A DNA stretch of 64,000 nucleotides, from positions 62,001-126,000 of the IMG/VR virus record IMGVR_UViG_3300047157_000197; one strand, 5' to 3'. Shown here piece by piece: positions 8,875 to 58,056 of this stretch (position 1 is its first letter; each line of letters opens with the position of its first letter). The notes beneath the pieces are model-generated. The model saw nothing but the letters and a program-made list of their open reading frames with translations, made no database searches and was not told the DNA's origin. The position numbers and the translations under genes were made by a program.

Positions 8875-8907
8875 TATATTTATAAATATATTTAGATAAT
8901 ATTTATA
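8875..8907. promoter_or_regulatory. Bidirectional ATATTTATA promoter region
   Basis: Perfect palindrome TATATTTATAAATATA (8875-8890) holds the motif on both strands; further + copy at 8899-8907. Confidence 0.6.
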
Positions 8908-8928
8908 TAAGAAAACAAGGAATCTTAT

Positions 8929-18824: not shown

Positions 18825-18856
18825 TTAGGATATATGAAATAATTTTCGTATATTTA
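18825..18856 (+). promoter_or_regulatory. Bacteroidota-type sigma70 promoter, second copy
   Basis: TTAGGATAT...ATTTTCGTATATTTACA matches 3394-3426, same 20-nt spacer. Confidence 0.6.
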
Positions 18857-18876
18857 CACAAGTAAAGTTATAAAAA

Positions 18877-25250: not shown

Positions 25251-25275
25251 TATATATTAATATACAAGAAATTCA

Positions 25276-27455: not shown

Positions 27456-27460
27456 CTCAA

Positions 27461-32233: not shown

Positions 32234-33188
32234 AAAGGTTTTGATAACAGGTGCCAACGGATTGGTTGGTAATTACATGGTTCAAAAATGTATCGATAGA
32301 GGTGCATTTGTAACGGCGGTTGATATAAGACAACCAGACAATCAACTAGAAAAATATAAAGATGAAAATTACCAATTCATTAATGCAGATTTAAGAGAGT
32401 TCTCCTCGTGTAAAAGAGTTGTAGAGGGTCAAGATATCATATTTCATATTGCAGGTGTTAAGGGTTCTCCTAAGAGGGCAATGGAACAACCTGCTGATTA
32501 CTTTGTACCTATGTTACAATTTAATACCAATATGATGGAAGCAGCAAGATTAGAAGATGTAGAATGGTATGTGTACACTTCAACTGTTGGAGTATATCAA
32601 CCAGCTGAGGTATTTTATGAAGATGATGTATGGAAAACATTCCCATCAGAAAAAGATAAGTATGCTGGATGGGCAAAGAGATTAGGTGAATTACAAGCTG
32701 AAGTTTATTCTGTATCATTTGATTGGAATAAGGCATCGGTTGTAAGACCAGCAAACATTTATGGTAGACATGATAACTTCGGACCAGAATCAACAGTAAT
32801 TGCATCACTTATTAAAAGATTATTTGGTGAAAAGGAACATCCACTAATTTGTTGGGGAGATGGTTCACCAATCAGAGATTTTATTTATGCTGGTGATGTT
32901 GCTGATGGTATCATAAAATCATACGAACAAAAATTAACACAACCAATCAACTTAGGTAGTGGTACTGGTGTTACCATTAGAGAACTTGCTGAAACTCTTG
33001 TAGATATTTACGAAGAAATGTATGGAGTTAAGGTTGGTATCGAATGGGATAGTACAAAACCAAATGGAGATGCTAAAAGATTGATGAGTACAGAAAGAGC
33101 AGAATCTTTCGGAGTTATTCAACAAGTATCTTTAAGAGAAGGATTAAAAGAAACAATAGATTATTATTTAAACGAATTTACAAAATAA
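32223..33188 (+). CDS. NAD-dependent NDP-sugar epimerase/reductase (GDP-fucose-synthase-like SDR)
   Basis: TGANGLVG, RPANIYG, WGDGSPIRDFIY, NLGSG. Confidence 0.85.
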   Translation: MKNKKVLITGANGLVGNYMVQKCIDRGAFVTAVDIRQPDNQLEKYKDENYQFINADLREFSSCKRVVEGQDIIFHIAGVKGSPKRAMEQPADYFVPMLQFNTNMMEAARLEDVEWYVYTSTVGVYQPAEVFYEDDVWKTFPSEKDKYAGWAKRLGELQAEVYSVSFDWNKASVVRPANIYGRHDNFGPESTVIASLIKRLFGEKEHPLICWGDGSPIRDFIYAGDVADGIIKSYEQKLTQPINLGSGTGVTIRELAETLVDIYEEMYGVKVGIEWDSTKPNGDAKRLMSTERAESFGVIQQVSLREGLKETIDYYLNEFTK

Positions 33189-33194
33189 AAAGTT

Positions 33195-34187
33195 ATGAAA
33201 AAAACAGACAAAATATTAGTTACAGGAGCAAGTGGATTTATAGGTTCACGATTAGTTAAATCACTTTATGAAGGTGGATTTACAGATATAAGAGCAACAT
33301 CTTGGAGTAGAGATTTAAGAAATGATTTCGAAGGATGTGAAAATGTAGAATTTTTAAAAGGAAATTTACAAGATGCAGATTTTTGTGAAATCGTATCAAA
33401 AGATATTGATGTAATTTTTCATTGTGCAGCTAACACTTCAAATGCTTTGGATACAAAATTTAATCCATTACTTCATGTTACACCAAATATTGAAATGAAT
33501 GTAAATCTTATGGAACAAAGTTGGAGAAACAAAGTTCGTAAGTTTATGTTTATATCATCTAATACAACATATCCTGATATGGGAGATGTTCCTTGTACTG
33601 AAGATATAGAAGTTCAAACACCAGATATTGTACCTGTATATAAAGCAGTGGGTAATATGAAAAGATATTGTGAAACACTTTGTGATTTCTTTTCAAATCA
33701 GATTCACGACCCAATGCAGTGTATTATTATCAGACCTTCTAATGCATTTGGACCAAATGATAAATTTGATTTTGAAAAATGTCATGTTACACCAGCAAAC
33801 ATTAGAAAAGTAGCAGATAATTTAAATCCTATTCCTGTATGGGGAGATGGAACTGAAGTAAGAGATGTTATTCATGTTGATGATATGGTAGGTGGGTTTA
33901 TTACAGTTGCAGAAAAAGTTGATACATACGATATTTACAATGTATCCTATGGTTCAGGTTATACTGTAATGGAAGTACTTGATAAAATTAAAGAAATAGA
34001 AGGAAACACAAATCCGGTAGAATTTGTTAATAACAAAGCACCGATGATACCTGTAAGACTTCTTGGTAACGATAAACTTGTTGCACTTGGATGGAAACCT
34101 AAATATGATTTAGATAGTGGATTGAGAGATGCACTTAAGTGGTATAAAGCAAACAAAGACCAGTTTAATCCAAATTCAAGACCATAA
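33195..34187 (+). CDS. NAD-dependent NDP-sugar epimerase/reductase (SDR)
   Basis: TGASGFIG, RPSNAFG, WGDGTEVRDVIHVDD. Confidence 0.85.
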   Translation: MKKTDKILVTGASGFIGSRLVKSLYEGGFTDIRATSWSRDLRNDFEGCENVEFLKGNLQDADFCEIVSKDIDVIFHCAANTSNALDTKFNPLLHVTPNIEMNVNLMEQSWRNKVRKFMFISSNTTYPDMGDVPCTEDIEVQTPDIVPVYKAVGNMKRYCETLCDFFSNQIHDPMQCIIIRPSNAFGPNDKFDFEKCHVTPANIRKVADNLNPIPVWGDGTEVRDVIHVDDMVGGFITVAEKVDTYDIYNVSYGSGYTVMEVLDKIKEIEGNTNPVEFVNNKAPMIPVRLLGNDKLVALGWKPKYDLDSGLRDALKWYKANKDQFNPNSRP

Positions 34188-34738
34188 TGGCAGAACCAAA
34201 ATTTACACCATATTTAGATGCTTTAACAGAAGCAATGAAATTAAGTATGGAAAATGATAACACAATATTCATCGGACAGCAGATAGTTTATTATGGCAAC
34301 CCAATGAGTAAAACCATTGAAGGATTGCCAAAAGAACGAATGATTGAAACTCCTGTAATGGAAGAAGTTCAAATGGGAATGACTTTAGGGTTAGCAATGT
34401 ATGGTCATTCAGTAATTAGTTTTTATCCAAGATGGGATTTTGTTATATGTGCTGCAAATCAATTAGTAAATCATTTAGATAAAATAAATGTAATGTCTGA
34501 TGGTGCATGGAATCCAAATATAATTATTCGAGTTGGTAAGGGAAGTGATACACCACTTGACCCTGGTCATCAACACAAAGCAGATTATACAGAAGAATTT
34601 TCATCTATGTTAAAACATACAAATGTAGTAAAACTTGATACTCATGAAAAAATACTTCCAGCTTATAAAGAAGCATTAACAAATGGTGGTATTTGGGTGA
34701 TGGTTGAATATCCTCAATTATACTATGAAGATAAATAG
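34187..34738 (+). CDS. TPP-dependent E1-beta/transketolase pyrimidine-binding subunit (short)
   Basis: ETPVMEE.QMG..LGLA, CAANQLVNH, PGHQH. Confidence 0.85.
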   Translation: MAEPKFTPYLDALTEAMKLSMENDNTIFIGQQIVYYGNPMSKTIEGLPKERMIETPVMEEVQMGMTLGLAMYGHSVISFYPRWDFVICAANQLVNHLDKINVMSDGAWNPNIIIRVGKGSDTPLDPGHQHKADYTEEFSSMLKHTNVVKLDTHEKILPAYKEALTNGGIWVMVEYPQLYYEDK

Positions 34739-36179
34739 AGTATTTGATATTATTGGACCACGAGGACCAGTGCCAAATGGTTTAAATTGGAATTTTACTG
34801 ATACGTTTTGGGATTACGATTTTTATATCTATCATAAACTTATTGATAAATTTAATGAATCATATACACAAATATCTGTTTATGATTGTAATTTAAATTT
34901 ACCACAAGATATTATAAAAAACTATCATATAAGTGATTTACATTTTGATGAAAATGCAAAAGAAATCACAAACAAAAAAGAAAATTATTTTTTTACCATA
35001 CATCCATTTGGTAACATTCACATTTCTACTGGATTAGATACGAGCTATCACGAAGGTAGACATAGTTTTGATTTTATATCAAAGAAAACAAAATCATATT
35101 CTAAAGCTTCAAATTTTTGGTTTATATATGATTATAGTAGTGAAGGTGATATTAACGAATATATATTTGAATCATTACATCTTGCGTGTGAACGAAACAA
35201 TATAAATCCCTCAAAAATTATTGTAATAACTGCATCTGAAAATACTTTTGATATTTACAAAAAATATTTAGATAAAAATCCACAAGATAATTTATTATAT
35301 ACAGCATTTTATCCATGGTCACTTCTTGGAAAAGCAAAAGATACAAATTCCATTTTGTTTGAAAATAAAATAATAAATTTTCATGGGTTTAAAAATAAAA
35401 ATTCTGTAATGTTAGATGAAGAATTTGATAATCTAACTCAACGAGAATCTCATGCACTTTGTTTAAATAGAAGATTGGCACCTCATAGAATAATATTAAT
35501 AAGTTGGTTACTTGAAACTAAACTTTTTGATAAAACAAAAACTTCTTTTGATATAAATCTGTTACACTCACATGATGCCGGATTAGATTTAATATCAGGC
35601 AGTGGACATGATGAAGAGGGCTATATTAAAACACAGCCTATTAAAAATCTAATAATGGGTGGTTATCGAAAAATGATAAAGAAAGAAAAAAGTATTATAG
35701 ATTTTGAAGATATAGAAAATGTTTGGGGATTTGCATTTGAAAACTCAGAAAACTATAAATCAACCTATTTTTCAATTGTAACAGAAACTCTTTTTTATGA
35801 GTTTGGAAATTATTTATCTGAAAAAACTTGGAAACCAATTGCACACTTACATCCATTTATTTTTGTTGGTAGACCTGGTATGTTGAAGTTTTTACATAGT
35901 TTAGGATTTAAAACTTTTAGTGAGTATTGGGATGAAAGTTATGATACTGTCGAATCAAACTCATTAAGAATGGAAAAGATATTTGAAGTTACTACAACAC
36001 TATTATCTAAAAGTAAAGATGAGTGGGATTTATTAAATAAAAAATTAAAACCTATACTTATTTATAACAGAAATTTACTTTTATCATTTCAAGAAGAAAA
36101 GGTAGGTAATGCTTATAAAAATAAATTATTTAATTTAATTAAACATGAACCTAATCAAGAAAATTATTACTTACTTTAA
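34725..36179 (+). CDS. Putative glycosyltransferase-like protein (paralog 4)
   Basis: LCLNRR...IVTETLF...YLSEKTWKPIAHLHPF...GFKTFSEYWDESYD; likely start 34725 (track 34704). Confidence 0.5.
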   Translation: MKINRVFDIIGPRGPVPNGLNWNFTDTFWDYDFYIYHKLIDKFNESYTQISVYDCNLNLPQDIIKNYHISDLHFDENAKEITNKKENYFFTIHPFGNIHISTGLDTSYHEGRHSFDFISKKTKSYSKASNFWFIYDYSSEGDINEYIFESLHLACERNNINPSKIIVITASENTFDIYKKYLDKNPQDNLLYTAFYPWSLLGKAKDTNSILFENKIINFHGFKNKNSVMLDEEFDNLTQRESHALCLNRRLAPHRIILISWLLETKLFDKTKTSFDINLLHSHDAGLDLISGSGHDEEGYIKTQPIKNLIMGGYRKMIKKEKSIIDFEDIENVWGFAFENSENYKSTYFSIVTETLFYEFGNYLSEKTWKPIAHLHPFIFVGRPGMLKFLHSLGFKTFSEYWDESYDTVESNSLRMEKIFEVTTTLLSKSKDEWDLLNKKLKPILIYNRNLLLSFQEEKVGNAYKNKLFNLIKHEPNQENYYLL

Positions 36180-36275: not shown

Positions 36276-36284
36276 ATATTTATA
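36276..36284 (+). promoter_or_regulatory. ATATTTATA putative promoter
   Basis: Followed by TAAGGT SD (36291) and ATG 36306. Confidence 0.6.
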
Positions 36285-36305
36285 TACTGATAAGGTGTAC
36301 CGAAT

Positions 36306-39300
36306 ATGAATAAACTTTCCAAATTTCTCGTAGAGAGTATAATGGAGGATGCGAATCCTATTAAAAAAACCGTAGTTGTCTATGTGGGTAGGTTTCAACC
36401 TATGCATAAAGGACATGCTGGTACTTACCAACACCTTGTCAAAAAGTTCGGTAAGGATAATGTTTATGTTGGTACATCTGATAAGGTACAATTACCTAAA
36501 TCACCTTTTAACTTTAAAGAAAAGGTAAAAATTATGACTACTATGTTTGGAATTCCAAAATCCAAAATACATAAAGTCAAGAATCCATACAAACCCACAG
36601 AAATTCTTAAAAAGTTTGATGAAGAAACAACTGCATTCGTAACTGTTGTTGGTGAGAAAGATAAAAACCGATTAGGTGGTAAATACTTTCAACCATATAA
36701 GGGAGAACCATCTGTGGGATATAGAGATGGTGGGTATGTTTATGCAGCTCCAATGACTGGTGGTTCAGTAAGTGGTACAGAAGTACGAAATGGATTATCA
36801 GTTGGTTCTGATGAACAGAAAAAGAATTTCTTTAAGAAACGAGCATATGGAAAGTTTAATGCAACTATTTTTAGTATGATTACTGATAAACTCGATGAGG
36901 GAATTGAAATTTCTAAAGAGATGATTGAGGAGTGGTTGTTAAACGAGGGTTCTAAGATGGGAAGTGGTCAAGCAGATGACGGACCTAACTTTATGTTTCC
37001 AAATTATGATGTTTTCTCTAAGATAAATGTAGATAGAGCAAAAAGAATTGGTTATGAAGTGGTAAATATGATTACTAACAAAGAGTTAGAAGATTACTAT
37101 GACCATCCAACATACCCAAATGGACCTGTTAAAGCAGTAACTCCATTTCCAGCAGGTGTACTTGGTACAACAACTGCAACTAACCAAGTTGATATCTATT
37201 CATCAGATGCTTATTCTAAATGGTTTAAGCACGTAACTCGTAAAGCAGCATTAGTTGGTTACGAATTAGTAAAAGGATTAGATACTAATAAAGATGAAAA
37301 AGAACAATCATTAGATTCTCAAAAAGGTGATAAAAAATCACAAGAAGAATACGAAGCATCTTTAAATGAAAATATAGTACTACCAATTAAAGTTGGCGAT
37401 ACCATTATGACTGGTAGATTTAAGAACAAGAAAACAGTTGTTAAATCAATCGGTAAAGATGAACATGGAATGCCAACAATCAATGGTAGAAAAGTAGTTA
37501 CCTTTAGAATGGTTAAAGAAGGATTCATTTCAGAACTTGCAGGAACAGAAGTAAAGTGTGAAAAATGTAATCACCAATGGGAAATCGAATCTGATGATAG
37601 TGAAAAGTATTTATGTCATTCATGTGGATGGGATTCTCAAAAAGGAGAATACGATTTTGATGCATTTGATTCGTGGCAAGAGAAAATGGGTATATCCGAA
37701 GATGTAGATGTAGAAGAAAGTAAAGGTAGATTAAGACCCGCCGCATTACTTAGAAGAAAAGCAGCGATGGCTGGAAAACGAGCTCAAATTGCAAGAAGGA
37801 GAGCAAGAACAATGAAGAGAAGAAAACCTCTTTCTAAACTTAAAAAGATTGCATACAAAAAAGCATACCTACAAGTTTATGATGAGTTTATGAAAGATTT
37901 GTTTCCTGGTAAAAAGAAAAATGAATTATCTATCGCACAGGCTAAAGTAGTTCATAAGAATGTATTAAGAAAAAAAGGTAGAGTTAGGAAAAGAGCCAAG
38001 TTTAGATTCTTGCCAGCATTAAGAGATGCAGAAGTACAGAAGTTTGGTAAAAAAGATGATACTAATGAATTGATGATTGGATATGCTGGACCTGAAGATA
38101 TGAAAAGGTTCGATAAAAGAAATAAGGAATATAGAAAAGATTCTGATTCTAATAAAGAATATCAATACGATACTATAAAGGAAGTTAATGAATTCTTTTA
38201 TATGGATTTCAAAAAGTATGTTTACAAAAACAGAAAACAAATCAATCAAAAACTAAAAGGATTATCTTATAGAAAAAAGGCAGAGTTCTTAGAGTTACTT
38301 TGGAAAAAACAAGTTGGTAAAGGATTCGGTAAAGATGCTGATGGTAGAGATATACATTACAAACTTAAATCAGATAAAGTAATTAAGGAATCGTTACCAA
38401 CAAAGGTAACAGATAAGTTTAAATCTGTAAAGAGTAGTAAACCTTCATCAGAAGCTGAAAAGGATTTTAATAAACATCATACATATTCATCATATGCAAA
38501 AAGAGGTTCAATAGCTGAACCAGATACAATTGATTTTGATGATGATGATAAAAAAGGTGGACATCAAGAGAAAGAAAAGGATACTAAGAAAAGAGGATAT
38601 GAACCAATTGAAGAAAGTTTAAAAGATTTAGGAATAAAAGATTTTAAATCGTTATTTAAGAAAATGCCTTCTGATTTACAAAAGAGAGTTTACAATCTAA
38701 AAAACTTTGGACAGAGAGTAGATAAACATCCTGAAGGAAATGTTCTTAAACACACAATCGTAGTTGTAAATCGTTCAATCAAAGAAGATGATATTGATAT
38801 TGCAATAGCAGCAATGTTCCATGATATAGGAAAAGATGAAACTGCAGGTATTCATCCAAAGAAAGGACACATTACACACTTTGGACATGAGAAAGTATCG
38901 GCATCTTTAGTAAAGAAGTATAAAAAGTTTATAGAATCAGTTGGTGGTAATCCAGCAAATGTATTTTACATTGTTAAAAACCATATGAGATACAAACAAC
39001 TATCTGTAATGACTCCTAAAAAAGTAAATAAACTAAAATCATTCAGAGCATTTGATAAATTAGGTAAATTCTCAAAACACGATAGAAGTGGATTAGATGA
39101 GAACAAAGCAACAAGAACTAAATTTAGTTTATCTGTACCATCTGATATTAAAAAACTTCAAAAGGCATTTAAAAAGAATAAAAAACAACTTTATGTTGTA
39201 GGTGGAGCAGTTAGAGATGCACTTATGGGTAATTCCCCAAAAGATTTCGATTTAACAACAGATGCAACACCAGAAGAAATGATTAAGATTGCTAAACAAG

Positions 39301-41513
39301 GTAATTTTAAACATTCAACAAATAACGTAAACTCAAATCTTGGATTGGGTAGTATAATCATAAATGGACACGAGGTAACTACATTTAGAGAAGATATTGG
39401 TAAAGGTAGAAGGCCTGATAAAGTAAAGTGGTGTGATATTTCAACTGATTCTAAAAGAAGAGATTTAACTTGTAACTCATTATACTATGATATTGATAAA
39501 AAAGAGATTATTGATTTTCATGGTGGAGTAGAAGATTTAAAAAAGGGTGTTGTTAAAACAGTTGGTAAAGCATCAGAACGATTTGATGAAGACCCATTAA
39601 GAAAATTAAGAGCAGTAAGGTTTGAAACTAGATTAGGTGGTAAACTTGATAAAGAAACATTAACTGCACTTAAAAAAGATAACAACATATCACAACTTTC
39701 AGGTGAAAGAATCATGAGAGAGTTTAGAAGTGCAATCAAACAATCAAAAAACACTAAAGTTTATTTAGAAAGATGTGATGAGATTGGATTTACTAAACAA
39801 ATCCTACCAGGTCTTAAAGTAAGTAAACCATATCCACACGATAATAACTATCTTACATTTATTGCATTTATTTTAAGAGATAATGACCCGAGTAAAGTAG
39901 GAAACGTATTAAATAAAATTAATTATAGTAATAATGATAAAGATGATATTACATTTTTAATATCATTAAAGGATTTCACACCAGAAAAGATTATCCAATT
40001 TAAAAAACAACATGAAAATGTAAAATCAATATCTGATAAAGATATTTTAGAATTTGGTAAACGAATTGGTAAAAAACTTGATAAGTTTGTAAAATTTAAG
40101 TTATCTGTAAAGGGAAGTGATATACCAAAAGATATACCTAATGGACCAGAACGAGGTAATTGGATTAAAAATCAAGAAAAGGAAAAGTTTATGAATGAAA
40201 TAGAACAATTAATAAGTGATATTGATAATAAAATAGTTGAAATGTTTTTACCAAACACTAAAACACCACAACAACTAATCAAAGAAAACATAAACGAAAC
40301 CAAATTACTACAAGAGGGTGGTGCGTATGGACACATGTCTCATCCATTTGATACTGATATCAATTTAACCTTTGGACAACTTAAAGATATCGTAAATCGT
40401 GCTTTAGAAGGTACACTTGAGTTCACACGAGAGAAAACAGATGGTCAAGCACTAGCTATTTCATGGAGAGATGGTAGGTTAGTAGCCGCAAGAAACAAAG
40501 GACACCTTAAAAACAAAGGTGAGAACGCTTTAGATATCAAAGGTGTATCAGATAAGTTCCAAGGTAGAGGTGGATTGAGTGATGCTTACAATTATGCAAT
40601 GAAAGACTTATCGAATGCTATCAAATCCCTTTCAGATAAACAAAGAGATAAGATTTTTAAACAAGGTGCGTGTTTTATGAACCTTGAAGTGATATATCCA
40701 ACATCAGTAAACGTTATTCCTTATGGTCAAGCATTACTTGTGTTCCATGGTACTATGGAATTCAACATGGATGGTGTTGCAATTGGAGAGAATGGTGATG
40801 CGGCTAGAATATTAGCTGGTATGATTAAACAAGTTAACAAAGATGTACAAGATAATTACACTATTCAAGGACCTCCTATTGTAAAATTACCAAAATCACA
40901 AGATTTATCTACTAAACGTAGTAAATACTCATCAATGATATCCAAATTGCAGAGTGAGTTTAGTTTAAAAGATACTGATGGTGTTGCAAACTATCACCAA
41001 TCATGGTGGGAACAATGGGTTGATAAGAATTCTCCATCATCACTTGATAATAAAACCAAAATGGGGTTAGTTAAGAGATGGGCATTCATGGATAAGAAGT
41101 TTAGATTAGATAAAAAGAACATTACTGATGAAAAAACATTAGAATGGGCTAAGAAAATAGATAAAGAAGACCAAAAGAAGATTAGTAAAAAGAACTTAAT
41201 GAAGTTTGAACAAATATTCTTAGGTTTAGGTGCAGAAGTGTTAGAGTTTACCTCATCTGCACTAACAGTTAATGCTGATGGAGCAGTTCGTGATATGAAA
41301 AAACGAATTGATAAGACAATTAAAGATGTTAAGAAATCAGGTGACCCAAAAAAGATAGAAAAACTTAAATTAGAACTTGGTAGATTAAAATCTATCGGTG
41401 GTTCTAAAAAAATTGTACCGAATGAAGGTATTGTGTTCTTATATAAAGGAAATACTTTTAAACTTACAGGTACATTCGCATCCGTAAATCAGATACTAGG
41501 TATTTTCTTTTAA
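36306..41513 (+). CDS. Multi-domain polyprotein: HIGH nucleotidyltransferase + Zn ribbon + basic module + HD domain + CCA-adding enzyme + ligase-like domain
   Basis: GRFQPMHKGH (~36387); CEKC/CHSC; HPEG.V..HT...FHDIGK...FGHE (38620-39100); VGGAVRD, DFD, RRDLT, EDPLR (39110-40190); EKTDG...EGIVF...FKLTG (40320-41510). Confidence 0.88.
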   Translation: MNKLSKFLVESIMEDANPIKKTVVVYVGRFQPMHKGHAGTYQHLVKKFGKDNVYVGTSDKVQLPKSPFNFKEKVKIMTTMFGIPKSKIHKVKNPYKPTEILKKFDEETTAFVTVVGEKDKNRLGGKYFQPYKGEPSVGYRDGGYVYAAPMTGGSVSGTEVRNGLSVGSDEQKKNFFKKRAYGKFNATIFSMITDKLDEGIEISKEMIEEWLLNEGSKMGSGQADDGPNFMFPNYDVFSKINVDRAKRIGYEVVNMITNKELEDYYDHPTYPNGPVKAVTPFPAGVLGTTTATNQVDIYSSDAYSKWFKHVTRKAALVGYELVKGLDTNKDEKEQSLDSQKGDKKSQEEYEASLNENIVLPIKVGDTIMTGRFKNKKTVVKSIGKDEHGMPTINGRKVVTFRMVKEGFISELAGTEVKCEKCNHQWEIESDDSEKYLCHSCGWDSQKGEYDFDAFDSWQEKMGISEDVDVEESKGRLRPAALLRRKAAMAGKRAQIARRRARTMKRRKPLSKLKKIAYKKAYLQVYDEFMKDLFPGKKKNELSIAQAKVVHKNVLRKKGRVRKRAKFRFLPALRDAEVQKFGKKDDTNELMIGYAGPEDMKRFDKRNKEYRKDSDSNKEYQYDTIKEVNEFFYMDFKKYVYKNRKQINQKLKGLSYRKKAEFLELLWKKQVGKGFGKDADGRDIHYKLKSDKVIKESLPTKVTDKFKSVKSSKPSSEAEKDFNKHHTYSSYAKRGSIAEPDTIDFDDDDKKGGHQEKEKDTKKRGYEPIEESLKDLGIKDFKSLFKKMPSDLQKRVYNLKNFGQRVDKHPEGNVLKHTIVVVNRSIKEDDIDIAIAAMFHDIGKDETAGIHPKKGHITHFGHEKVSASLVKKYKKFIESVGGNPANVFYIVKNHMRYKQLSVMTPKKVNKLKSFRAFDKLGKFSKHDRSGLDENKATRTKFSLSVPSDIKKLQKAFKKNKKQLYVVGGAVRDALMGNSPKDFDLTTDATPEEMIKIAKQGNFKHSTNNVNSNLGLGSIIINGHEVTTFREDIGKGRRPDKVKWCDISTDSKRRDLTCNSLYYDIDKKEIIDFHGGVEDLKKGVVKTVGKASERFDEDPLRKLRAVRFETRLGGKLDKETLTALKKDNNISQLSGERIMREFRSAIKQSKNTKVYLERCDEIGFTKQILPGLKVSKPYPHDNNYLTFIAFILRDNDPSKVGNVLNKINYSNNDKDDITFLISLKDFTPEKIIQFKKQHENVKSISDKDILEFGKRIGKKLDKFVKFKLSVKGSDIPKDIPNGPERGNWIKNQEKEKFMNEIEQLISDIDNKIVEMFLPNTKTPQQLIKENINETKLLQEGGAYGHMSHPFDTDINLTFGQLKDIVNRALEGTLEFTREKTDGQALAISWRDGRLVAARNKGHLKNKGENALDIKGVSDKFQGRGGLSDAYNYAMKDLSNAIKSLSDKQRDKIFKQGACFMNLEVIYPTSVNVIPYGQALLVFHGTMEFNMDGVAIGENGDAARILAGMIKQVNKDVQDNYTIQGPPIVKLPKSQDLSTKRSKYSSMISKLQSEFSLKDTDGVANYHQSWWEQWVDKNSPSSLDNKTKMGLVKRWAFMDKKFRLDKKNITDEKTLEWAKKIDKEDQKKISKKNLMKFEQIFLGLGAEVLEFTSSALTVNADGAVRDMKKRIDKTIKDVKKSGDPKKIEKLKLELGRLKSIGGSKKIVPNEGIVFLYKGNTFKLTGTFASVNQILGIFF

Positions 41514-42908: not shown

Positions 42909-44501
42909 ATGGCTAAACAAAGTTTAAAAGAAATAATAAAACTTGAGTATCAGAAATGTGCTCAAGACCCTATATACTTCATGAAGAAGTACTGTATGAT
43001 ACAACATCCAGTTAGGGGGAAAATTCCTTTTCACTTATATCAGTTTCAAGAAAGAACTTTAGACCAATTCGCAGAACACAGATACAACATCATTCTTAAA
43101 TCTCGACAAACGGGTATCTCAACCTTAACTGCGGGATTTTCACTTTGGAAGATGTTATTCAATCAAGATTTTAATGTATTGGTAATTGCAACTAAACAAG
43201 AAGTTGCCAAGAACCTTGTAACGAAGGTTCGTGTAATGAATCAATATTTACCATCATGGTTAAAACAAAATACAGTAGAGGATAACAAACTATCCTTAAG
43301 ATACTCGAATGGTTCTCAGATAAAAGCAACTTCAGCCGCTGGTGATGCTGGTCGTTCTGAAGCATTATCTTTATTAGTATTTGATGAGGCAGCATTTATT
43401 GATAAGATTGAAGATATTTGGGTATCGGCACAATCAACACTATCGACTGGGGGTAATGCAATTATCCTATCTACTCCAAATGGTGTAGGAAACTTTTTTC
43501 ACAAAACTTGGGTAGGTGCAGAAGAAGAAACAAATACTTTTAACACTATTAGATTACATTGGAGTGTACATCCAGAAAGAGACCAAGATTGGAGAGATGA
43601 ACAAGAAGTTTTATTAGGACCAAAAGGAGCAGCACAAGAATGTGATTGTGATTTTGTATCTTCGGGTGATACTGTGATAGACCCACAACTCCTTATGTTC
43701 TATAAAGAATCATTTATCCAAGAACCAGTTGAAAAGACTGGATTCGATGGAAATCTTTGGAAGTGGGAATATCCAAACTATCAGAAATCTTATATGGTAG
43801 TTGCCGATGTTGCTCGTGGTGATGCTGCCGATTTCTCGGCATGTCATGTTATTGATATAGAAGAATCATCTCAAGTTGCAGAATATAAAGGTAAATTAGA
43901 TACAAAAGATTTTGGAAATTTTCTTGTATCTCTTGCAACCGATTATAACAATGCATTACTAGTAGTTGAGAACGCAAATATTGGTTGGGCAGTAATTCAA
44001 CAAGTAATTGATAGAGGATATGGAAACCTTTTCTATATGAGTAAAGATTTAAAGTATGTAGATGTAGAGAATCAATTAACAAACAAATACAGAGCACAAG
44101 ATAGAGGGTTAACTGCAGGTTTTAGTACAACATCTAAAACAAGACCTCTAATCATATCTAAATTAGAACAATACATTAGAGAAAAATCCGTTACAATTCG
44201 TTCACAAAGAACAATAGATGAATTATTTACATTTATATGGAATGGTAATAGAGCAGAAGCAATGAGGGGTTATAATGATGATTTAACGATGTCCCTTGCA
44301 ATATCGTTGTGGGTTAGAGATACTGCTTTGAGATTAAGACAAGAAGGAATTGATTTAACAAAACAGGCATTAGGTGGAATTGGAGCACATCAATTGGATG
44401 TTGCTGGAATGGGATTTGGTGGTAATGCTTCTATGGATGAAAACCCATGGAAAATGCGGGTTGGGGATAGTAATGAAGATTTAACTTGGTTAATTAAATA
44501 A
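42909..44501 (+). CDS. Terminase large subunit (T4 gp17-like)
   Basis: YQFQ Q-motif, KSRQTGIST Walker A, LLVFDEAAFI Walker B, VADVARG and YNDDL nuclease motifs. Confidence 0.95.
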   Translation: MAKQSLKEIIKLEYQKCAQDPIYFMKKYCMIQHPVRGKIPFHLYQFQERTLDQFAEHRYNIILKSRQTGISTLTAGFSLWKMLFNQDFNVLVIATKQEVAKNLVTKVRVMNQYLPSWLKQNTVEDNKLSLRYSNGSQIKATSAAGDAGRSEALSLLVFDEAAFIDKIEDIWVSAQSTLSTGGNAIILSTPNGVGNFFHKTWVGAEEETNTFNTIRLHWSVHPERDQDWRDEQEVLLGPKGAAQECDCDFVSSGDTVIDPQLLMFYKESFIQEPVEKTGFDGNLWKWEYPNYQKSYMVVADVARGDAADFSACHVIDIEESSQVAEYKGKLDTKDFGNFLVSLATDYNNALLVVENANIGWAVIQQVIDRGYGNLFYMSKDLKYVDVENQLTNKYRAQDRGLTAGFSTTSKTRPLIISKLEQYIREKSVTIRSQRTIDELFTFIWNGNRAEAMRGYNDDLTMSLAISLWVRDTALRLRQEGIDLTKQALGGIGAHQLDVAGMGFGGNASMDENPWKMRVGDSNEDLTWLIK

Positions 44502-44532: not shown

Positions 44533-44922
44533 ATGATATCATTAAAAAATTTACTTAACGAAGAAATACACACAGAAGAATATACTGTGGAAAATTATCA
44601 CGATATAAAAGAATTCTGTGAATTCATGAAAGAATACAAATCTGATATGAATGAAGCTGAGTATCAAGGTAGAACAGTTAAACTTGGAAAACCAATGCAA
44701 GGTGATACTAAGAAATTCAAAGTATATGTCAAAAACCCCAAAGGTAATGTAGTAAAAGTAAACTTTGGACATGGAGGAAGTTCAGCAAAGAAATCAGGAG
44801 AAAAAACAATGTCTATTCGAAAGAATAATCCAGATGCAAGAAAAGCATTTAGAGCTAGACACAATTGTGATTCACCAGGTCCAAGACACAAAGCAAGATA
44901 CTGGTCTTGTAGAAAATGGTAA
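44533..44922 (+). CDS. Small basic head-associated protein with acidic leader
   Basis: MISLKNLLNE leader, DMNE/AEYQGRTVKLGKP...FRARHNCD...YWSCRKW. Confidence 0.6.
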   Translation: MISLKNLLNEEIHTEEYTVENYHDIKEFCEFMKEYKSDMNEAEYQGRTVKLGKPMQGDTKKFKVYVKNPKGNVVKVNFGHGGSSAKKSGEKTMSIRKNNPDARKAFRARHNCDSPGPRHKARYWSCRKW

Positions 44923-49443: not shown

Positions 49444-49620
49444 GTGACTAAAAAAGAATTGTATGATATAATCAATGAGGAAATCGTTAACTTCAAAAAA
49501 GGAAAAATTAACGAAGACCTTAATGAGTCTGATAAAGATTTAATAAGAAAAATCATCAGACAAGAGGTATCAGCAATCTTTTTTGATTTATTTAAAAAAC
49601 GTAAAAGTTGGGGAGCATAA
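49444..49620 (+). CDS. Small prohead core-like protein (GTG start, not in ORF track)
   Basis: VTKKELYDIINEEIVNFKKGKINEDLNESDKDLIRKIIRQEVSAIFFDLFKKRKSWGA*, 58 aa; stop overlaps protease ATG. Confidence 0.65.
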   Translation: MTKKELYDIINEEIVNFKKGKINEDLNESDKDLIRKIIRQEVSAIFFDLFKKRKSWGA

Positions 49621-50201
49621 TGGCAAATTTATTAATAGAAACAAACCTATTCGAAGGTAGAGTAAACGAGGACGAGAGTGGAAGAACTATCGTTAAGGGT
49701 ATTTTACAAAGAGCAGGTGCAGAAAATCAAAATGGAAGGATATATCCTAAACCAATTTTGATGAGAGAAGCTAAGAAATACGAAACACTTATTAAAGAAA
49801 GAAGAGCACTTGGTGAATTAGACCATCCAGATTCTTCTGTAATCAATCTAAAGAATGTATCTCATAACGTAAGAGAGATTCATTGGGATAACGATGATTT
49901 AGTAGGAACAGTTGAGATATTACCTACCCCATCTGGTAACATCTTAAAAGAACTACTTAAAGCAGGAATCCTTTTAGGTATATCATCAAGAGGTATGGGT
50001 TCAGTAGAACCTCTATCAGGTGGTAAAGTACAAGTAGGTGAAGATTTTGAATTGATAGGTTGGGATTTTGTTTCTAATCCATCAACACATGGAGCATTTA
50101 TGACTCCGATGAACGAATCTGTTAACAAACAAGGTGAAGTTTGTAACGAGTGGTGTAAATCACAAGATTTAATGAGAGAAATTATAACAGAATTAAACTA
50201 A
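49620..50201 (+). CDS. Prohead protease (T4 gp21-like)
   Basis: NQNGRIYP, ALGELDHP, NVSH, GISSRGMGS, WDFVSNPST; likely start 49620 (track 49608). Confidence 0.95.
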   Translation: MANLLIETNLFEGRVNEDESGRTIVKGILQRAGAENQNGRIYPKPILMREAKKYETLIKERRALGELDHPDSSVINLKNVSHNVREIHWDNDDLVGTVEILPTPSGNILKELLKAGILLGISSRGMGSVEPLSGGKVQVGEDFELIGWDFVSNPSTHGAFMTPMNESVNKQGEVCNEWCKSQDLMREIITELN

Positions 50202-50204: not shown

Positions 50205-50393
50205 ATGGCATTTGATATAAAAAAATATTTAGGTGATAATGATATTAAATTAGGAACAGTAACAAGAAACGTTGCAAGTGTTCCATTTAAAGGTGGTCAC
50301 AACGATATAAGAAAAACTAATTATGATGTTAAGATTACCGAAGATGGTAAACTTGATTTATATACTCTTAAAAAGGAGACAAAGAAATTATGA
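50205..50393 (+). CDS. Small head-region protein
   Basis: 62 aa, MAFDIKKYL N-terminus resembling capsid MANFDLSKL. Confidence 0.55.
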   Translation: MAFDIKKYLGDNDIKLGTVTRNVASVPFKGGHNDIRKTNYDVKITEDGKLDLYTLKKETKKL

Positions 50394-52204
50394 TTAAACT
50401 AACTGATTTATTACAAGAACAAGATTCATTTACTGCAATCAACAAAAGTAGTGGTAACGTAACTGCATTTAAATCAAAAGATGCAAGAGACTCTGCAGTT
50501 AAATCAGGTACTCATGATAAAAATAAAGATTCAGAAGATGATGATGATAAAAAAGATACTCCTAAAGTAAACATCTTTAAAAGGGATAATGATTCCGACT
50601 CAAAGAAAAATCTTCAGAAAATGAAAAAAGATAAAAGTGGAACTCAAAAATCTTTATTTCCTGATGAGAAACCAGATTCAAAACCAACTGGTGATTCTAA
50701 TAAAATAAAAGACCCAAAAGGAATGTCAAAGGTTGTTCCTAAAGATATTGGAACAGACCCTGATAAGATGGAAGCTTGGCTATTTGATGAAGATGGTGCA
50801 ATTGGAGATGGTCAAAGTTTCGGAATGAGTGATAAAAACGCAGATGAACTTTACAATTTACATGGTAAATATGATGATGCAAAAAAAGCTGGTGATAAAA
50901 AAGAAATTGAACGAACTAAGAAAGAGTACATTGAATTTGTTTATAACAATTTAGAAAAAAATCAAAACAAACCAAAAGAACCTGAAACAAACGATTATTG
51001 GAACAAGGATAAAGATGCACCTAAGAGAGATGATAACACCGATACACAGATAGATGATGTTCAAAATAATATTGGTGATTTAGATGGCGATGAAATGAGA
51101 GATTATGCAGAATCAGATATATTCCCATATCTTAAAGGGAAAGATTTAGAAATTGCAAAATCATTAGTAGATGATATTGAAGATTCTGGTTCAGATTTTG
51201 TTAGAAGTGCTGATGTAAGGGCAGATTTAAAAGATTTATTTGATAAGAAAATGACTTTAGATTCTCCAAAAATAAAACCTTTTGCTCCAAAACCATCTAA
51301 AATTGTACTAAAGAACCTTGATACATTAGGTGACATGGCGATTGGTGATAAACCAGCATTAAATCCAAAAGATATGGGTGATGCAGAATATGAAAGAACA
51401 ATGTTACGAATGATACATAATTCATTAGAAGATTCAAACTATCATACGGCTAACAGATTTATCTTTGCAGATTTAGAAGGTAATAAAGAAAAAAGAAAGA
51501 AAGCTGATTTCAGAAATGCTCCAGATTTAGGTTCGCCTGATTATAAAGATTGGACAGAAAAAAACACTATCTATACAAAAGATTTTAATGCAGGATTTAA
51601 TAGAAAAAATGAAAGAGATGATTTATTTGATAAAGTTTCAATTGAAGCTGCTCAAAAATCAGGACATGATGGTGGACAAATTCTTGCTGGTTATCTTGTA
51701 AAACTAAGAAAAGATGGTAAAGAAGATTTAGCAAATAGAATTCAAAAATCATTTGAAGATGCTGAAAAATCTATGGATGAGGGTAAACTTAGTATCACAT
51801 CTCTTGTTAAAGAATCTATATTTATAAAAAATTTAATCAACGAAGGAACTCGTTCTCAAGTTGGTGTGATTGGTAGAAATGGTAAGATTGTTTCTGCATA
51901 CGTTCATTTCGATGGTTATCCATCAAATATGAAACCAGGTTTAAAACATCACATGAAGAACGAAAAAGATGTTCTTAAACTAATCAAGATGGGTGGGGCA
52001 AGAGGAATCTTTGATGATAAAGAAATTGAATATTACAAAAAAAGTGGTCAACCATTAAAAGGTGATTCTAAAGATATTAAATCATATATTAACGATGCTG
52101 GAGTTGAGGCTGGAGCAGAATATGTATATTTATACAATATAAAGGATAAGAAATGGTATTTCGCCGATGTATATGGTAAAAAAGAACTAAAAAAATTATT
52201 TTAA
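50390..52204 (+). CDS. Internal head polyprotein with C-terminal TRS...HFDGYP domain
   Basis: MIKLTDLLQE leader; D/K-rich middle; LINE/GTRSQVG...YVHFDGYP...AEYVYLY C-terminal module. Confidence 0.65.
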   Translation: MIKLTDLLQEQDSFTAINKSSGNVTAFKSKDARDSAVKSGTHDKNKDSEDDDDKKDTPKVNIFKRDNDSDSKKNLQKMKKDKSGTQKSLFPDEKPDSKPTGDSNKIKDPKGMSKVVPKDIGTDPDKMEAWLFDEDGAIGDGQSFGMSDKNADELYNLHGKYDDAKKAGDKKEIERTKKEYIEFVYNNLEKNQNKPKEPETNDYWNKDKDAPKRDDNTDTQIDDVQNNIGDLDGDEMRDYAESDIFPYLKGKDLEIAKSLVDDIEDSGSDFVRSADVRADLKDLFDKKMTLDSPKIKPFAPKPSKIVLKNLDTLGDMAIGDKPALNPKDMGDAEYERTMLRMIHNSLEDSNYHTANRFIFADLEGNKEKRKKADFRNAPDLGSPDYKDWTEKNTIYTKDFNAGFNRKNERDDLFDKVSIEAAQKSGHDGGQILAGYLVKLRKDGKEDLANRIQKSFEDAEKSMDEGKLSITSLVKESIFIKNLINEGTRSQVGVIGRNGKIVSAYVHFDGYPSNMKPGLKHHMKNEKDVLKLIKMGGARGIFDDKEIEYYKKSGQPLKGDSKDIKSYINDAGVEAGAEYVYLYNIKDKKWYFADVYGKKELKKLF

Positions 52205-52214: not shown

Positions 52215-52967
52215 ATGATTAAATTAACCCAACTAATGAACGAATCAGAAGAAAAGAGACCTCTTTCTAATGAAGTTAAAAAACACTTCTTAGAAATCGT
52301 TTCTACTTACAACAAGTACCAAGAATCAATGGATAGAAAATCTGATATTACTCAAGTAGCAGAAACACTTGGTGGTATTACAGAAGCAGCTAGAACATTA
52401 GCAATTCACGAAGGAGATGATTGGTTTGATAAACACACCATTAAAAGAAACATGAGTGAATTGGATAAGTTGGGTAAACAATTCGATAAAGTTGCTCTTG
52501 AAGCTAAGGCACTTGACCAAAGAATGGGTGGATTATATGAAGATATGGGACACATACTTTCAAGGTACTACAAGATTGGTGAGATTTCAGAAGACCAGAT
52601 GAAAGAACGTTTAGGAATGAACGAATCTAAAGAAGATTGTGGTTGTGGATGTAATGGAACAACTCCAGGTGGATGTAATGAATCTTTAAACGAAGAACCT
52701 GTTGCAGTATCAATGAGAAACGATGATGGTTCTATCACTACTACAATAAAAGAAGTAAATGAATTAAATGAACAAGAAACTGCATTATATGAGTTTGGCC
52801 AAAAGGTTGAAACTCTAATGGAGAAAAATTGTCCAACTGATTCAAGTAAATGGAGTTCTTACAAATCACAAGCAAAAAAGAAATTTGATGTTTATCCATC
52901 AGCATATGCTAATGGTTGGGCAGCTAAGAAATATAAAGCAGCAGGTGGAGGATGGAAGAAATGCTAA
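52215..52967 (+). CDS. Internal head protein with C-terminal YPSAYANGW module
   Basis: MIKLTQLMNE leader; helical domain; CGCGC; LME/KNCPTD...YPSAYANGWAAKKYK. Confidence 0.6.
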   Translation: MIKLTQLMNESEEKRPLSNEVKKHFLEIVSTYNKYQESMDRKSDITQVAETLGGITEAARTLAIHEGDDWFDKHTIKRNMSELDKLGKQFDKVALEAKALDQRMGGLYEDMGHILSRYYKIGEISEDQMKERLGMNESKEDCGCGCNGTTPGGCNESLNEEPVAVSMRNDDGSITTTIKEVNELNEQETALYEFGQKVETLMEKNCPTDSSKWSSYKSQAKKKFDVYPSAYANGWAAKKYKAAGGGWKKC

Positions 52968-56448: not shown

Positions 56449-58056
56449 ATGGCAAATTTTGATTTATCTAAATTAATGGAAGGAAAGAACCCACAACAAG
56501 TGATGCTAGCTGAAACTAGAGAACTTAAAGGTAAATGGGAACAAACTGGACTTCTTGAAGGTTTAGGAGAGAGAGAACAATCACAGGTATCTGTATTGTT
56601 AGAAAACCAAGCAAAACAATTGCTTGATGAAGCTACTGCTACCGGTACAGGTGGTGGAAATGAAGAGTGGAGTGGAGTAGCTCTACCATTAGTAAGACGT
56701 ATCTTCGGTGAAATTGCATCGAAAGAATTCGTTAGTGTACAACCAATGAACTTACCATCTGGACTAATCTTTTATCTAGATTTCAAATACGGTTCAGCTC
56801 AACCAGGAAACCCATCATTCAGCGGAAATTCACTTTTCGGTGGTACAGGTGCAGACCTTGGTTCAACTGATTCTGCTGTAAATGGTCTTTATGGTGAAGG
56901 TAGATTTGCATATACTGCAAATGACGTATCTGATTCAGTAGGTAATAGTGATTTAACTATCGCTTCTGCTTCTTGGGCAGATGTAAATTATGATGCATCA
57001 TTATCAGCTTCAGTTGCTGATGGTTCATTAGCTAGTATTAAATTTAACGCATCTGAATTAGTAAGACCTGATTTAGACGGTGTAAGAAGTTTTTACATCT
57101 CATCTTCAGATTTCGCATCTGCAGATTCTTATTACCCAGCACACTCTAGTGTTTCTGGTGTTGTAGGTTCAGAAGTAATTACTACATTCGCAAAAATCTC
57201 ATCTTTAGGTGGTGATTTAGCAGTTAAACATTCACAACAACCAATCGCTGCAAACAGAGGAGACTTCGAAGATGCTTCTCCATCTGAACCTGCAACTGAT
57301 ATAGGTATTCCAGAAGTTGATTTAGAACTTAAGTCTGAAGCAATTGTTGCTAAGACAAGAAAACTAAAGGCTGTATGGACACCTGAATTGGCTCAAGATT
57401 TAAATGCATACCACAGTATTGATGCTGAGGCTGAATTAACTTCAATGTTATCTGAGTACATCTCATTAGAGATTGACCTAGAAATCCTTGATATGTTAAA
57501 GTCTAACGCGTTAACAACTGAATACTGGTCTGTATCTTTAGGTGAAGAGTATGATGCAAACACAAGTGGTTGGGTTGCTGGAAGTAATTCTGCAGCTTAT
57601 ACTAAAAACTCTTGGTTCCAAACTTTAGGAGCTAAGTTGAATAAAGTATCTAACAAGATACACCAATTAACTTTAAGAGGTGGAGCTAACTTCGTTGTTG
57701 CTTCTCCTGACGTATGTACAATTTTAGAATCTATTCCAGGATTTGCAGTTTCAGCTGATAAAGATGCTTCATCTTTCGCTGCAGGTGTAACTACTGTTGG
57801 TTCTTTATCAAACAGATATACAGTTTACAAGAACCCTTATATGACTTCTAACGAAATCTTATTAGGATTCAAAGGAAGTAATTTCCTTGAGACTGGAGCT
57901 GTTTATGCACCATATGTACCGTTAATTATGACTCCACTTGTATATGACCCAACTAACTTTACACCAAGAAGAGGTGTAATGACTAGATACGCTAAGAAAA
58001 TGGTAAGACCAGAATTCTATGGTAAAATCTATGTTAAAGATTTAAACAACTTATAG
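56449..58056 (+). CDS. Major capsid protein (T4 gp23-like)
   Basis: LLENQ, LPLVRR, VQPMNLPSGLIFYL, KTRKLKAVWT.ELAQDL.A.H.IDAEAEL, YAPYVPL, GVMTRYA. Confidence 0.97.
   Translation: MANFDLSKLMEGKNPQQVMLAETRELKGKWEQTGLLEGLGEREQSQVSVLLENQAKQLLDEATATGTGGGNEEWSGVALPLVRRIFGEIASKEFVSVQPMNLPSGLIFYLDFKYGSAQPGNPSFSGNSLFGGTGADLGSTDSAVNGLYGEGRFAYTANDVSDSVGNSDLTIASASWADVNYDASLSASVADGSLASIKFNASELVRPDLDGVRSFYISSSDFASADSYYPAHSSVSGVVGSEVITTFAKISSLGGDLAVKHSQQPIAANRGDFEDASPSEPATDIGIPEVDLELKSEAIVAKTRKLKAVWTPELAQDLNAYHSIDAEAELTSMLSEYISLEIDLEILDMLKSNALTTEYWSVSLGEEYDANTSGWVAGSNSAAYTKNSWFQTLGAKLNKVSNKIHQLTLRGGANFVVASPDVCTILESIPGFAVSADKDASSFAAGVTTVGSLSNRYTVYKNPYMTSNEILLGFKGSNFLETGAVYAPYVPLIMTPLVYDPTNFTPRRGVMTRYAKKMVRPEFYGKIYVKDLNNL

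Follow-up and report, generated by a model that had tools for sequence, protein, structure and literature searches.

A candidate RNA-repair fusion protein with a capsid-targeting-like leader in a T4-like phage

Phage T4 counters PrrC with two enzymes, Pnkp and Rnl1, that heal and seal RNA, and it loads a set of proteins into its prohead by means of a short N-terminal capsid-targeting sequence (CTS). To our knowledge, these two subjects, phage RNA repair and T4 capsid targeting, have never been connected, although each is textbook material. Here, we describe a gene that may join them. It lies in a 64,000-nt stretch of DNA (positions 62,001 to 126,000 of IMG/VR virus record IMGVR_UViG_3300047157_000197, hereafter the window), occupies positions 36306..41513 of the + strand and encodes a fusion protein of 1,735 residues in which an adenylyltransferase, an HD phosphoesterase, a CCA-type nucleotidyltransferase (NTase) and an RNA-ligase-like domain follow a CTS-like leader. 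A role in RNA repair (3′-end healing, CCA restoration and sealing), probably of tRNA, is predicted from the sequence and well supported by the identity of the domains, the conservation of their catalytic residues and the logic of the gene neighbourhood. Comparisons of the leader, the module junctions and the head genes suggest that the protein may also be packaged, processed and injected.

Other described systems approach parts of this arrangement. Jumbo phages carry RNA-repair sets that include Rnl1, Rnl2 or RtcB ligases, polynucleotide kinase (PNK), HAD or 2H phosphoesterases, a CCA enzyme and RlaP (PMC7824862). Healing and sealing also share one chain in bacterial Pnkp (kinase–phosphatase–ligase, with Hen1) and in fungal and plant Trl1 (ligase–kinase–cyclic phosphodiesterase), as described previously (PMC3675462, PMC10946426). 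Alt, which is loaded into T4 by its CTS, provides a precedent for a packaged enzyme (PMC9026906).

A multi-enzyme protein with an RNA-ligase-like domain

The open reading frame (ORF) is a single unbroken frame in a genome of around 30% GC, and it encodes a genuine multi-enzyme protein of a T4-like phage. An earlier note on this DNA had read an HD domain, a class II NTase and ligase motifs in one ORF, and all three were recovered with the ORF intact. From the N terminus, the modules are a leader of 10–14 residues, an adenylyltransferase of the nicotinamide mononucleotide (NMN) or phosphopantetheine type (NMNAT/PPAT), a zinc ribbon, a basic segment, the HD module, the class II CCA-type NTase, a linker and the RNA-ligase-like domain. 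A nucleotide search of cultured phages with the ORF returned no match.

The C-terminal domain (residues 1338–1735; 40317..41510, +) shows the motifs of the covalent nucleotidyltransferase superfamily in their order, Ia, III, IIIa, IV and V. The ligase motifs I, III, IIIa, IV and V listed in the earlier note are present as EKTDG (residues 1376–1380), NLEV (1459–1462), LVFHG (1478–1482), EGIVF (1707–1711) and FKLTG (1718–1722), and an alignment of 44 diverse homologues, some only 39% identical, shows no variation in the key residues: K-x-D-G, an Arg after it, the Glu of NLEV, the Phe and His of VFHG, the Glu-Gly of EGIVF and the Lys of FKLTG (for the last five, R82, E147, F166/H167, E393-G394 and K405 in domain numbering). 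Lys1377 (codon 40434..40436, +), the predicted AMP-accepting lysine, is invariant in the family and aligns with Lys99 of T4 Rnl1. The alignment to Rnl1 by hhalign is weak (E 0.087), yet it places the Lys and Glu of the family on Rnl1 K99 and E159. An AlphaFold2 (AF2) model of the domain (predicted local distance difference test (pLDDT) 89.9, predicted template-modelling score 0.83) has only ligases or capping NTases among its top 50 Foldseek neighbours in the PDB, with T4 Rnl1 first, followed by archaeal Rnl3, Naegleria Rnl5 and T4 Rnl2. In BFVD, a collection of predicted viral structures, the model has 27 matches at E ≤ 1e-3, including annotated Rnl1-type RNA ligases (E 1e-4 to 1e-3).

In other respects, the domain stands apart. 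Between motifs IIIa and IV, the AF2 model contains a helical insertion of roughly 200 residues that, as modelled, has no counterpart in the Rnl families described so far. Only 17 residues separate motif V from the C terminus, the protein stops 13 residues past FKLTG and no OB-fold domain follows motif V, which argues against a DNA ligase or a capping enzyme. The features of the T4 Rnl1 family, a match to Pfam RNA_lig_T4_1 and an all-helical tRNA-specificity domain C-terminal to motif V, are likewise absent. Searches of Pfam, NCBIfam and PHROG gave no family match for the domain, and there was no significant sequence match in the PDB; matches to eS6 in the profile-versus-PDB search were spurious, falling in the lysine-rich insertion. 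We therefore assign the domain to a new RNA-ligase-like family outside Rnl1, with a predicted sealing activity.

The HD module (residues 775–932; 38628..39101, +) matches Pfam HD at residues 823–898 (31 bits against a cutoff of 22), with HPEG and FHDIGK motifs. It bears the signature of a metal-dependent phosphohydrolase, and its activity on RNA 3′ ends is putative. In the PDB, it best matches (E 0.0015) the HD part of a class II CC/CCA-type enzyme from the 3wfo family. In that enzyme the HD module follows the NTase, whereas here it comes first, in keeping with the previously noticed reversal of the order of bacterial CCA enzymes. A match of the HD module to a polynucleotide kinase of Rhodothermus phage RM378 had been expected, and tblastn found none.

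The class II CCA-adding-type NTase (residues 939–1296; 39120..40193, +) is recognized by the Pfam PolyA_pol head (residues 962–1083; E 4.6e-27, 95 bits against a cutoff of 23), the PHROG tRNA nucleotidyltransferase (1.4e-53) and CCA enzymes in the PDB (3e-27). Motifs A (GGxVRD...DxD), B (RRD), C, D (EDxxR) and E are all located, including EDPLR at residues 1095–1099, and a regular-expression search of the module finds no bacterial poly(A) polymerase signature, as proposed for a class II enzyme with EDxxR. The best NCBIfam CCA equivalog reaches 155.8 bits, short of its cutoff of 290, and the pcnB model scores nearly the same; because the two models score alike and below cutoff, CCA rather than A, CC or poly(A) is a putative product.

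Directly behind the leader stands a domain that the earlier note, which had described the leader correctly, overlooked. Residues 20–200 (36363..36905, +; Pfam CTP_transf_like) contain GRFQPMHKGH (residues 28–37) and VSGTEVR (155–161), which conform to the (H/T)xGH and ISxTxxR motifs. The family profile best matches the archaeal NMNAT MJ0541 and NadM in the PDB (E 5.9e-7), and the AF2 model (pLDDT 90) is closest to nicotinic acid mononucleotide (NaMN)/NMN adenylyltransferases and PPAT (Foldseek probability 1.0). By its sequence, this is an adenylyltransferase of NMNAT/PPAT type, for which NMN is at most a predicted substrate, the score of about 30 bits being far from the NCBIfam NMNAT cut-offs (127–449 bits). 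Between this domain and the HD module, residues 216–770 have no family match in Pfam or NCBIfam. They include a CxxC...CxxC zinc ribbon (residues 418–440; 37557..37625, +), with weak HypA and MJ0042 zinc-finger matches and kept in the orthologue on the related contig L005, and a strongly basic segment (residues 471–600; 37716..38105, +; 31% Lys and Arg), a module that forms the N terminus of the relative P0019.

Comparison of domain content across related phages shows that the modules are shared as a cassette, together with a Pnk-like kinase or a 2H phosphoesterase. On the 189-kb contig L005, and on L006, each has a gene of its own, and these genes stand side by side shortly upstream of the terminase in the order adenylyltransferase (cytidylyltransferase-like, CTase) with DUF5661, CCA enzyme, AAA_33/KTI12 P-loop kinase, HD protein, a 414-residue ligase-like protein and, further on, the large terminase gene (TerL). 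Module by module, the window ORF aligns with the L005 genes at 53%, 47% (CCA), 65% (HD, a stand-alone gene in L005) and 74% identity; in the window, the cassette is therefore fused into one gene, the counterpart of four separate L005 genes, in a changed order and without the kinase. The L005 HD protein has a C-terminal extension (L005 9138–10004), absent from the fusion, that weakly resembles window positions 52518–52964, within the ORF at 52215 (E 0.01, 21% identity).

On a further T4-like contig, L010, the order is CTase, CCA enzyme fused to a 2H phosphoesterase in place of HD, ligase-like protein and, further on, TerL. The fused gene (L010 4540–6357) encodes 605 residues, a class II CCA-type NTase with a 2H phosphoesterase of the 2_5_RNA_ligase2/LigT type, analogous, except in its healing domain, to the NTase–HD fusion of bacterial CCA enzymes. 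This exchange of HD for a non-homologous 2H domain in the same slot supports healing and sealing of RNA ends and is the strongest contextual argument for it. More remote phages, namely Mel-JY01, LR756508, LR756500 and L009, have kept a single partner for the ligase-like domain, the adenylyltransferase, which is either fused to it (as in Mel-JY01) or encoded next to it. These two domains form the evolutionary core of the system.

The ligase-like family is large: clustering at 50% gives 1,763 representatives, of which 553 fall below E 1e-30. Its domain is nearly always at the extreme C terminus of proteins of up to 1,930 residues. UniProt labels them just ‘Cytidyltransferase-like domain-containing’ or ‘Uncharacterized’. 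Among around 50,000 cultured or deposited phage genomes, the family occurs in only 3 records. A Pfam census of 32 large members found the adenylyltransferase in 26, DUF5661 in 7, PolyA_pol in 4, AAA_33 (the Pnk-like kinase) in 4, HD in 3 and an intein in 1. The intein is of the Intein_splicing/Hint type, and another of the 32 has a SprT-like domain. In a scan of genome collections, the family was found only on contigs of metagenome-assembled genomes (MAGs), where all 18 matches (L013–L030) are short. Their bins belong to very different taxa, among them Pelagibacteraceae, Flavobacteriales, Pacearchaeota and Nitrosopelagicus, the best match, at 68% identity, coming from a Lake Baikal Pelagibacteraceae bin; probably these contigs are phage DNA wrongly assigned to low-GC MAGs. 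In the literature on pelagimyophages, the gene is not mentioned.

The contig L004 (ENA ERZ10646527 contig_28214) is about 95% identical to the window. Its corresponding locus (7854–11887) is split into several calls and its portal gene is broken, and it probably carries assembly errors. The CCA module is genuinely absent between its HD and ligase-like domains (P0050), so modules come and go among near-identical phages.

From these assignments, we propose a sequence of reactions. The HD domain would strip 2′,3′-cyclic or 3′-phosphates from RNA, the CCA enzyme would rebuild 3′ ends and the ligase-like domain would seal 5′-phosphate and 3′-OH ends through a lysyl-AMP on Lys1377, with the adenylyltransferase in a supporting role, possibly the supply or regeneration of a nucleotide cofactor.

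The leader, the module junctions and the prohead protease

The protein begins with MNKLSKFLVE|SIME (residues 1–14; 36306..36347, +), a CTS-like leader predicted to form an amphipathic helix. Its pattern, M-x-x-L-x-x-[LFIM]-[LMI]-x-E, occurs at 4 of the 452 Met starts in the window, where about 0.03 would be expected, and all four are real ORF starts. The other three belong to the head module: 44533..44922 (+; 129 residues, MISLKNLLNE), 50390..52204 (+; 604 residues, MIKLTDLLQE, with a C-terminal PHROG_1987 match) and 52215..52967 (+; 250 residues, MIKLTQLMNE, with a weak DUF5872 match). On the strength of the leader, these are candidate internal or ejected head proteins. The gp21-processed propeptides of T4 match it in length and form in the T4 record (gp24, MAKINELLRE|S; IPII and IPIII, MKTYQEFIAE|A; Alt, MELITELFDE), and the conserved positions 4, 7, 8 and 10 are those that matter in T4, where 4 and 7 govern targeting and 8 and 10 processing (PMC9026906). 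The pattern is retained in the L004 orthologues, and stand-alone ligase-like proteins begin MIRLxK[IL]LNE-VLLKE-GGAYGH. At the distant locus L003, another leader (MKFLKSYEEFLNE...) is again common to neighbouring ORFs.

Behind the leader, hydrophobic-x-Glu sites had been noted along the protein, and every one lies where it was reported. LLNE|G (residues 211–214; 36936..36947, +) stands at the end of the adenylyltransferase module and aligns with LISE|G in the L005 orthologue, and the linker ahead of the ligase-like domain (residues 1297–1337; 40194..40316, +) contains the tandem sites FMNE|, LIKE|, NINE| and LLQE|. This last junction is conserved: among 202 diverse relatives, Leu is found at P4 in 143, Leu or Ile at P3 in 199 and Glu at P1 in 183, with P2 variable, and the linker up to GGAY is disordered in the AF2 prediction (pLDDT below 50). 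In leaderless members of the family, an in-frame stop precedes a start at precisely M-GGAYGH, so that they would have the same mature N terminus that cleavage would create. In about 9% of relatives, the residue ahead of GGAYGH is not Glu but Met (ELLLM|GG; P0176, P0177, P0183, P0196 and others) or Cys (LLxC|GG; P0129, P0131, P0155, P0179 and others), and the Met could be an internal start giving a leaderless ligase. When module boundaries are defined as the ends of BLAST homology to the separate L005 genes and sites are sought from −8 to +4 residues, all five of the five junctions carry a hydrophobic-x-Glu site where about one would be expected (P ~0.0004, or 0.002 with a wider interval).

The same genome encodes both a protease of the T4 maturation type and a Glu-specific site in its capsid protein. 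The gp21/S77-type prohead protease (49608..50201, +) is recognized by the PHROG for head maturation proteases (5e-49), shares 33% identity with T4 gp21 (E 1e-21) and has an L004 orthologue with Peptidase_S77. In the gp23-type major capsid protein (56449..58056, +; Pfam Gp23, 7e-76), QLLDE|A aligns with the maturation site FLTE65|A of T4 gp23.

Upstream signals place the gene with the structural genes. A promoter-like core, TATTTATA (within CCATATTTATATAC; 36277..36284, +), lies 22 nt upstream of the ATG. The motif ATATTTATATA stands 18–40 nt upstream of the ORFs at 587, 8929, 20095, 41575, 44533, 46767 and 58206, and 12 of its 18 plus-strand matches are intergenic, compared with 4.9% of the sequence. 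The proposal of a late-type promoter with a Shine–Dalgarno sequence accordingly holds for this structural-gene motif and for a Shine–Dalgarno-like AAGGTG 8 nt before the ATG (36292..36297, +; other window ORFs have AGGAG-type sites), but not for the T4 late-promoter consensus TATAAATA, which is not enriched in the window and is essentially absent from its coding strand. A sigma-70 scan of the window was uninformative. A second promoter-like motif, TTTTCGTATATTTACA, distinct from ATATTTATATA, precedes the ORFs at 3446 and 18877 (window 3400–3445 and 18830–18876) and may mark another temporal class.

Indirect experimental precedent comes from cyanophages. A ‘cytidylyltransferase’, termed an NMNAT homologue, was found by mass spectrometry in CsCl-purified virions of T4-like cyanophages, as S-CREM2 ORF154 and S-SZBM1 gene 140 (PMC10665884, PMC9146016). 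One report remarks on their ‘frequent detection’ when cyanophage virions are analysed, with a caution about co-purification (PMC10665884). We find that gene 140 of Synechococcus phage S-SZBM1 has a CTS-like leader, MRFRQFIIE|A, and adjoins a distant ligase-like gene, 141 (L012, OL473597, 5478–6671, minus strand). Annotated as hypothetical, the gene 141 product contains H-x-x-H (THLEHLED), KWDG, EGFVAIK and MKLV; it is leaderless, and its fit to the family is by motifs, without statistical support. The virion-detected gene 139 was tested as a ligase-like homologue and rejected. Given the motif set of gene 141 and its place beside a cytidylyltransferase detected in virions, the pair may exist in T4-like cyanophages in a strongly diverged form. 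A 591-residue CTase-like protein of S-PM2 matches the ligase-like model structurally (E 2.6e-6, BFVD).

Almost all genes of the window lie on the + strand and include a T4-type head module with the large terminase (42909–44501) and a Portal_T4-type portal (44964–46700). The fusion gene, described earlier as sitting just before the terminase, is indeed upstream of it, but two small ORFs intervene. By capsid protein, the closest cultured relatives are Microcystis phage Mel-JY01 (53%) and Flavobacterium phage ‘immuto’ (51%), with Rhodothermus phage RM378 more distant. No tRNA genes were found in the window. Directly upstream of the fusion gene, a long run of sugar-nucleotide and glycosyl-type genes (21953–36179) holds epimerases, a dTDP-sugar isomerase and a second, small HxGH cytidylyltransferase (23371–23784); the L004 orthologues of the run include an E1/transketolase-like pair.

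Possible delivery with the genome and the alternatives to it

If the leader and the junctions act as their T4 counterparts do, the fusion gene would be expressed alongside the structural genes and its leader would target the protein to the prohead core. The gp21-type protease would then remove the leader and cut the L/I-x-Glu linker sites, at minimum before GGAYGHM, and the pieces would enter the host with the DNA, making repair activity available before phage transcription. Capsid targeting and processing draw on six independent lines of circumstantial evidence and on one experimental precedent, itself indirect; the support comprises the shared leader, the conserved disordered junction, the sites at five of five junctions, the gp21-type protease with its capsid-protein site, the promoter class and the cyanophage virion detection. 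That an RNA-repair fusion protein is packaged, processed and injected is, on the sequence, the best explanation, and we regard it as evenly poised between right and wrong. As to its parts, the balance tips somewhat towards leader removal and a cut before GGAYGH, and cleavage at the other junctions is less certain.

The main alternative keeps the same enzymology and makes the protein an ordinary cytoplasmic late enzyme, uncleaved and untargeted, in which the leader simply opens the adenylyltransferase fold as its first helix and L-L-x-E serves as a linker or as part of the fold. Much of what tells against packaging fits it. The leader helix is modelled with fair confidence (pLDDT ~80) and could be part of the fold; against this, the 10-residue leader recurs on three unrelated head-module ORFs, far above the 0.03 expected. 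In T4 itself, neither Pnkp nor Rnl1 belongs to the virion. A convincing leader is missing from the stand-alone CCA, kinase and HD genes of L005, and the ligase-like proteins of the T4-like relatives L009 and L010 are leaderless, yet an L-[LI]-x-E predicted to be disordered is kept before the ligase-like domain whatever stands upstream of it.

The sites themselves count on both sides. Over the whole protein, hydrophobic-x-Glu density is at chance (34 observed against 28.7 ± 4.5), and [LI][LIVM]xE-G shows no enrichment upstream in the relatives. With these global enrichment tests negative, ‘sites everywhere’ was dropped for ‘sites at junctions’: the claim of the earlier note that sites mark the domain boundaries survives in their placement, at five of five junctions, and not in their overall density. 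The null model of the junction test, whole-protein shuffles, is blind to linker composition, and Glu-rich linkers could inflate its result. The cyanophage precedent is also qualified, by the caution of its authors about co-purification, by the weak relation of the window N-terminal domain to cyanophage cytidylyltransferases (hhalign E 0.047, no tblastn match) and by the absence of S-SZBM1 gene 141 from the listed virion proteins (PMC9146016). A purely cytoplasmic enzyme would also have to share the promoter class of the structural genes and a place beside the head module. We consider it rather unlikely.

A second alternative takes the adenylyltransferase and ligase-like core out of tRNA repair altogether. 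The pair could make or regenerate NAD+ for an NAD+-using ligase, counter NAD+-depleting defences, seal phage DNA ends or nicks on entry, or adenylylate or cap RNA 5′ ends, with CCA and HD as opportunistic add-ons. The adenylyltransferase is present in 26 of the 32 large relatives, whereas the CCA, HD and kinase modules are fused in merely 4, 3 and 4, and distant phages retain only the CTase partner. The N-terminal domain is nearest to NMN/NaMN adenylyltransferases, several members of the ligase-like family weakly match the adenylation domain of NAD-dependent DNA ligase, and phages with pathways for NAD+ reconstitution have been described (cited in PMC12801897). The ligase-like model itself reaches only marginal E-values in the PDB (best 2.8e-3, none ≤ 1e-3). 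Its top structural neighbours are nonetheless RNA ligases (Rnl1, Rnl3, Rnl5 and Rnl2), not LigA, and it has neither an OB nor any other DNA-ligase accessory domain. The ligase-like domain has also associated repeatedly and independently with RNA-end enzymes, namely Pnk-like kinase, HD, 2H and CCA. This alternative seems to us improbable.

No 5′-kinase homologue occurs in the fusion ORF or elsewhere in the window, so the ORF alone does not cover 5′-end healing. The earlier description of a protein covering end healing, CCA re-addition and sealing stands for the modules and fails for this step; 5′-phosphorylation would have to come from a kinase encoded elsewhere.

Finally, an assembly or sequencing artefact joining neighbouring genes, which the split L004 region without its CCA module might suggest, is extremely improbable: a 5.2-kb open frame at 30% GC is not expected by chance, the broken L004 portal places the errors in L004, many independent metagenomic proteins cross the same junctions at 85–95% identity (P0121, P0122, P0004 and P0009 among them) and fusions of up to 1,930 residues ending in the ligase-like domain are the rule in the family.

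Significance and relation to known systems

Should packaging and processing of the RNA-repair fusion protein be confirmed, this would be the first known case of a phage genome that arrives with a ready-made RNA-repair toolkit. Such delivery would change the view of how phages counter anticodon nucleases and other defences aimed at tRNA, which take effect ahead of phage gene expression. Because the L-[LI]-x-E|GGAYGH junction is conserved and the leader shared, the packaging hypothesis is open to direct test. A broader proposal, that widespread T4-like aquatic phages load a protease-processed repair polyprotein by a CTS-type leader and inject its pieces with the DNA, so that RNA damage caused by host defences is mended ahead of phage gene expression, and that the adenylyltransferase–ligase pairing is a mechanism of cofactor-coupled ligation, is one that we offer tentatively and think unlikely. 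Packaging aside, the analysis brings out a very large RNA-ligase-like family, with more than 1,700 clusters at 50% identity and no Pfam model, and its pairing with the NMNAT-type domain offers a rationale for the puzzling ‘cytidylyltransferase’ that recurs in cyanophage virion proteomes. We did not find descriptions of the ligase-like family, of its near-obligate pairing with an NMNAT-type domain, of a cassette fusion with protease-type linkers or of a link between RNA repair and virion delivery.

The cyanophage cytidylyltransferases likewise have HxGH; they differ in lacking HD and CCA modules, and the papers that describe them settle on no function. The jumbo-phage sets share with the window cassette an inferred purpose and the CCA enzyme, kinase and cyclic phosphodiesterase, but the survey that describes them reports no such ligase-like family, NMNAT-type partner (‘NMNAT’ occurs 0 times), one-chain fusion or virion packaging (PMC7824862). 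Bacterial Pnkp and Trl1 are one-chain heal-and-seal enzymes as well. The module families of the window protein are others (HD, class II CCA NTase and NMNAT-like), its ligase belongs to another family and it has neither kinase nor Hen1. With bacterial CCA enzymes (E. coli Cca and the Aquifex/Thermotoga type, PDB 3wfo–3wfs), it shares motifs A–E with EDxxR and the same type of HD; the order is reversed, with HD first, and in L005 the HD and NTase are separate genes.

The closest comparisons are with T4. The heal-and-seal logic is that of Pnkp and Rnl1, and Rnl1 is the best structural neighbour of the ligase-like domain, with K99 and E159 aligned. T4 Pnkp heals 3′ ends with a DxDxT phosphatase, for which the window protein has HD (and L010 has 2H); the kinase is absent here, and a Pnk-like P-loop kinase occurs in the relatives. 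Rnl1 has its own C-terminal domain, whereas the ligase-like domain has the roughly 200-residue helical insertion inside its NTase fold and no Rnl match in Pfam. Unlike the window protein, the T4 repair enzymes are neither fused nor leader-tagged. In T4, the leader is found instead on the CTS proteins (IPI–III, Alt and gp24), none of which is described as a 200-kDa multi-enzyme chain with polyprotein-like internal linker sites, as the cargo predicted here would be; with them, the window protein shares a 10-residue leader ending in hydrophobic-x-Glu, the use of that leader by several proteins and a homologue of the gp21 protease.

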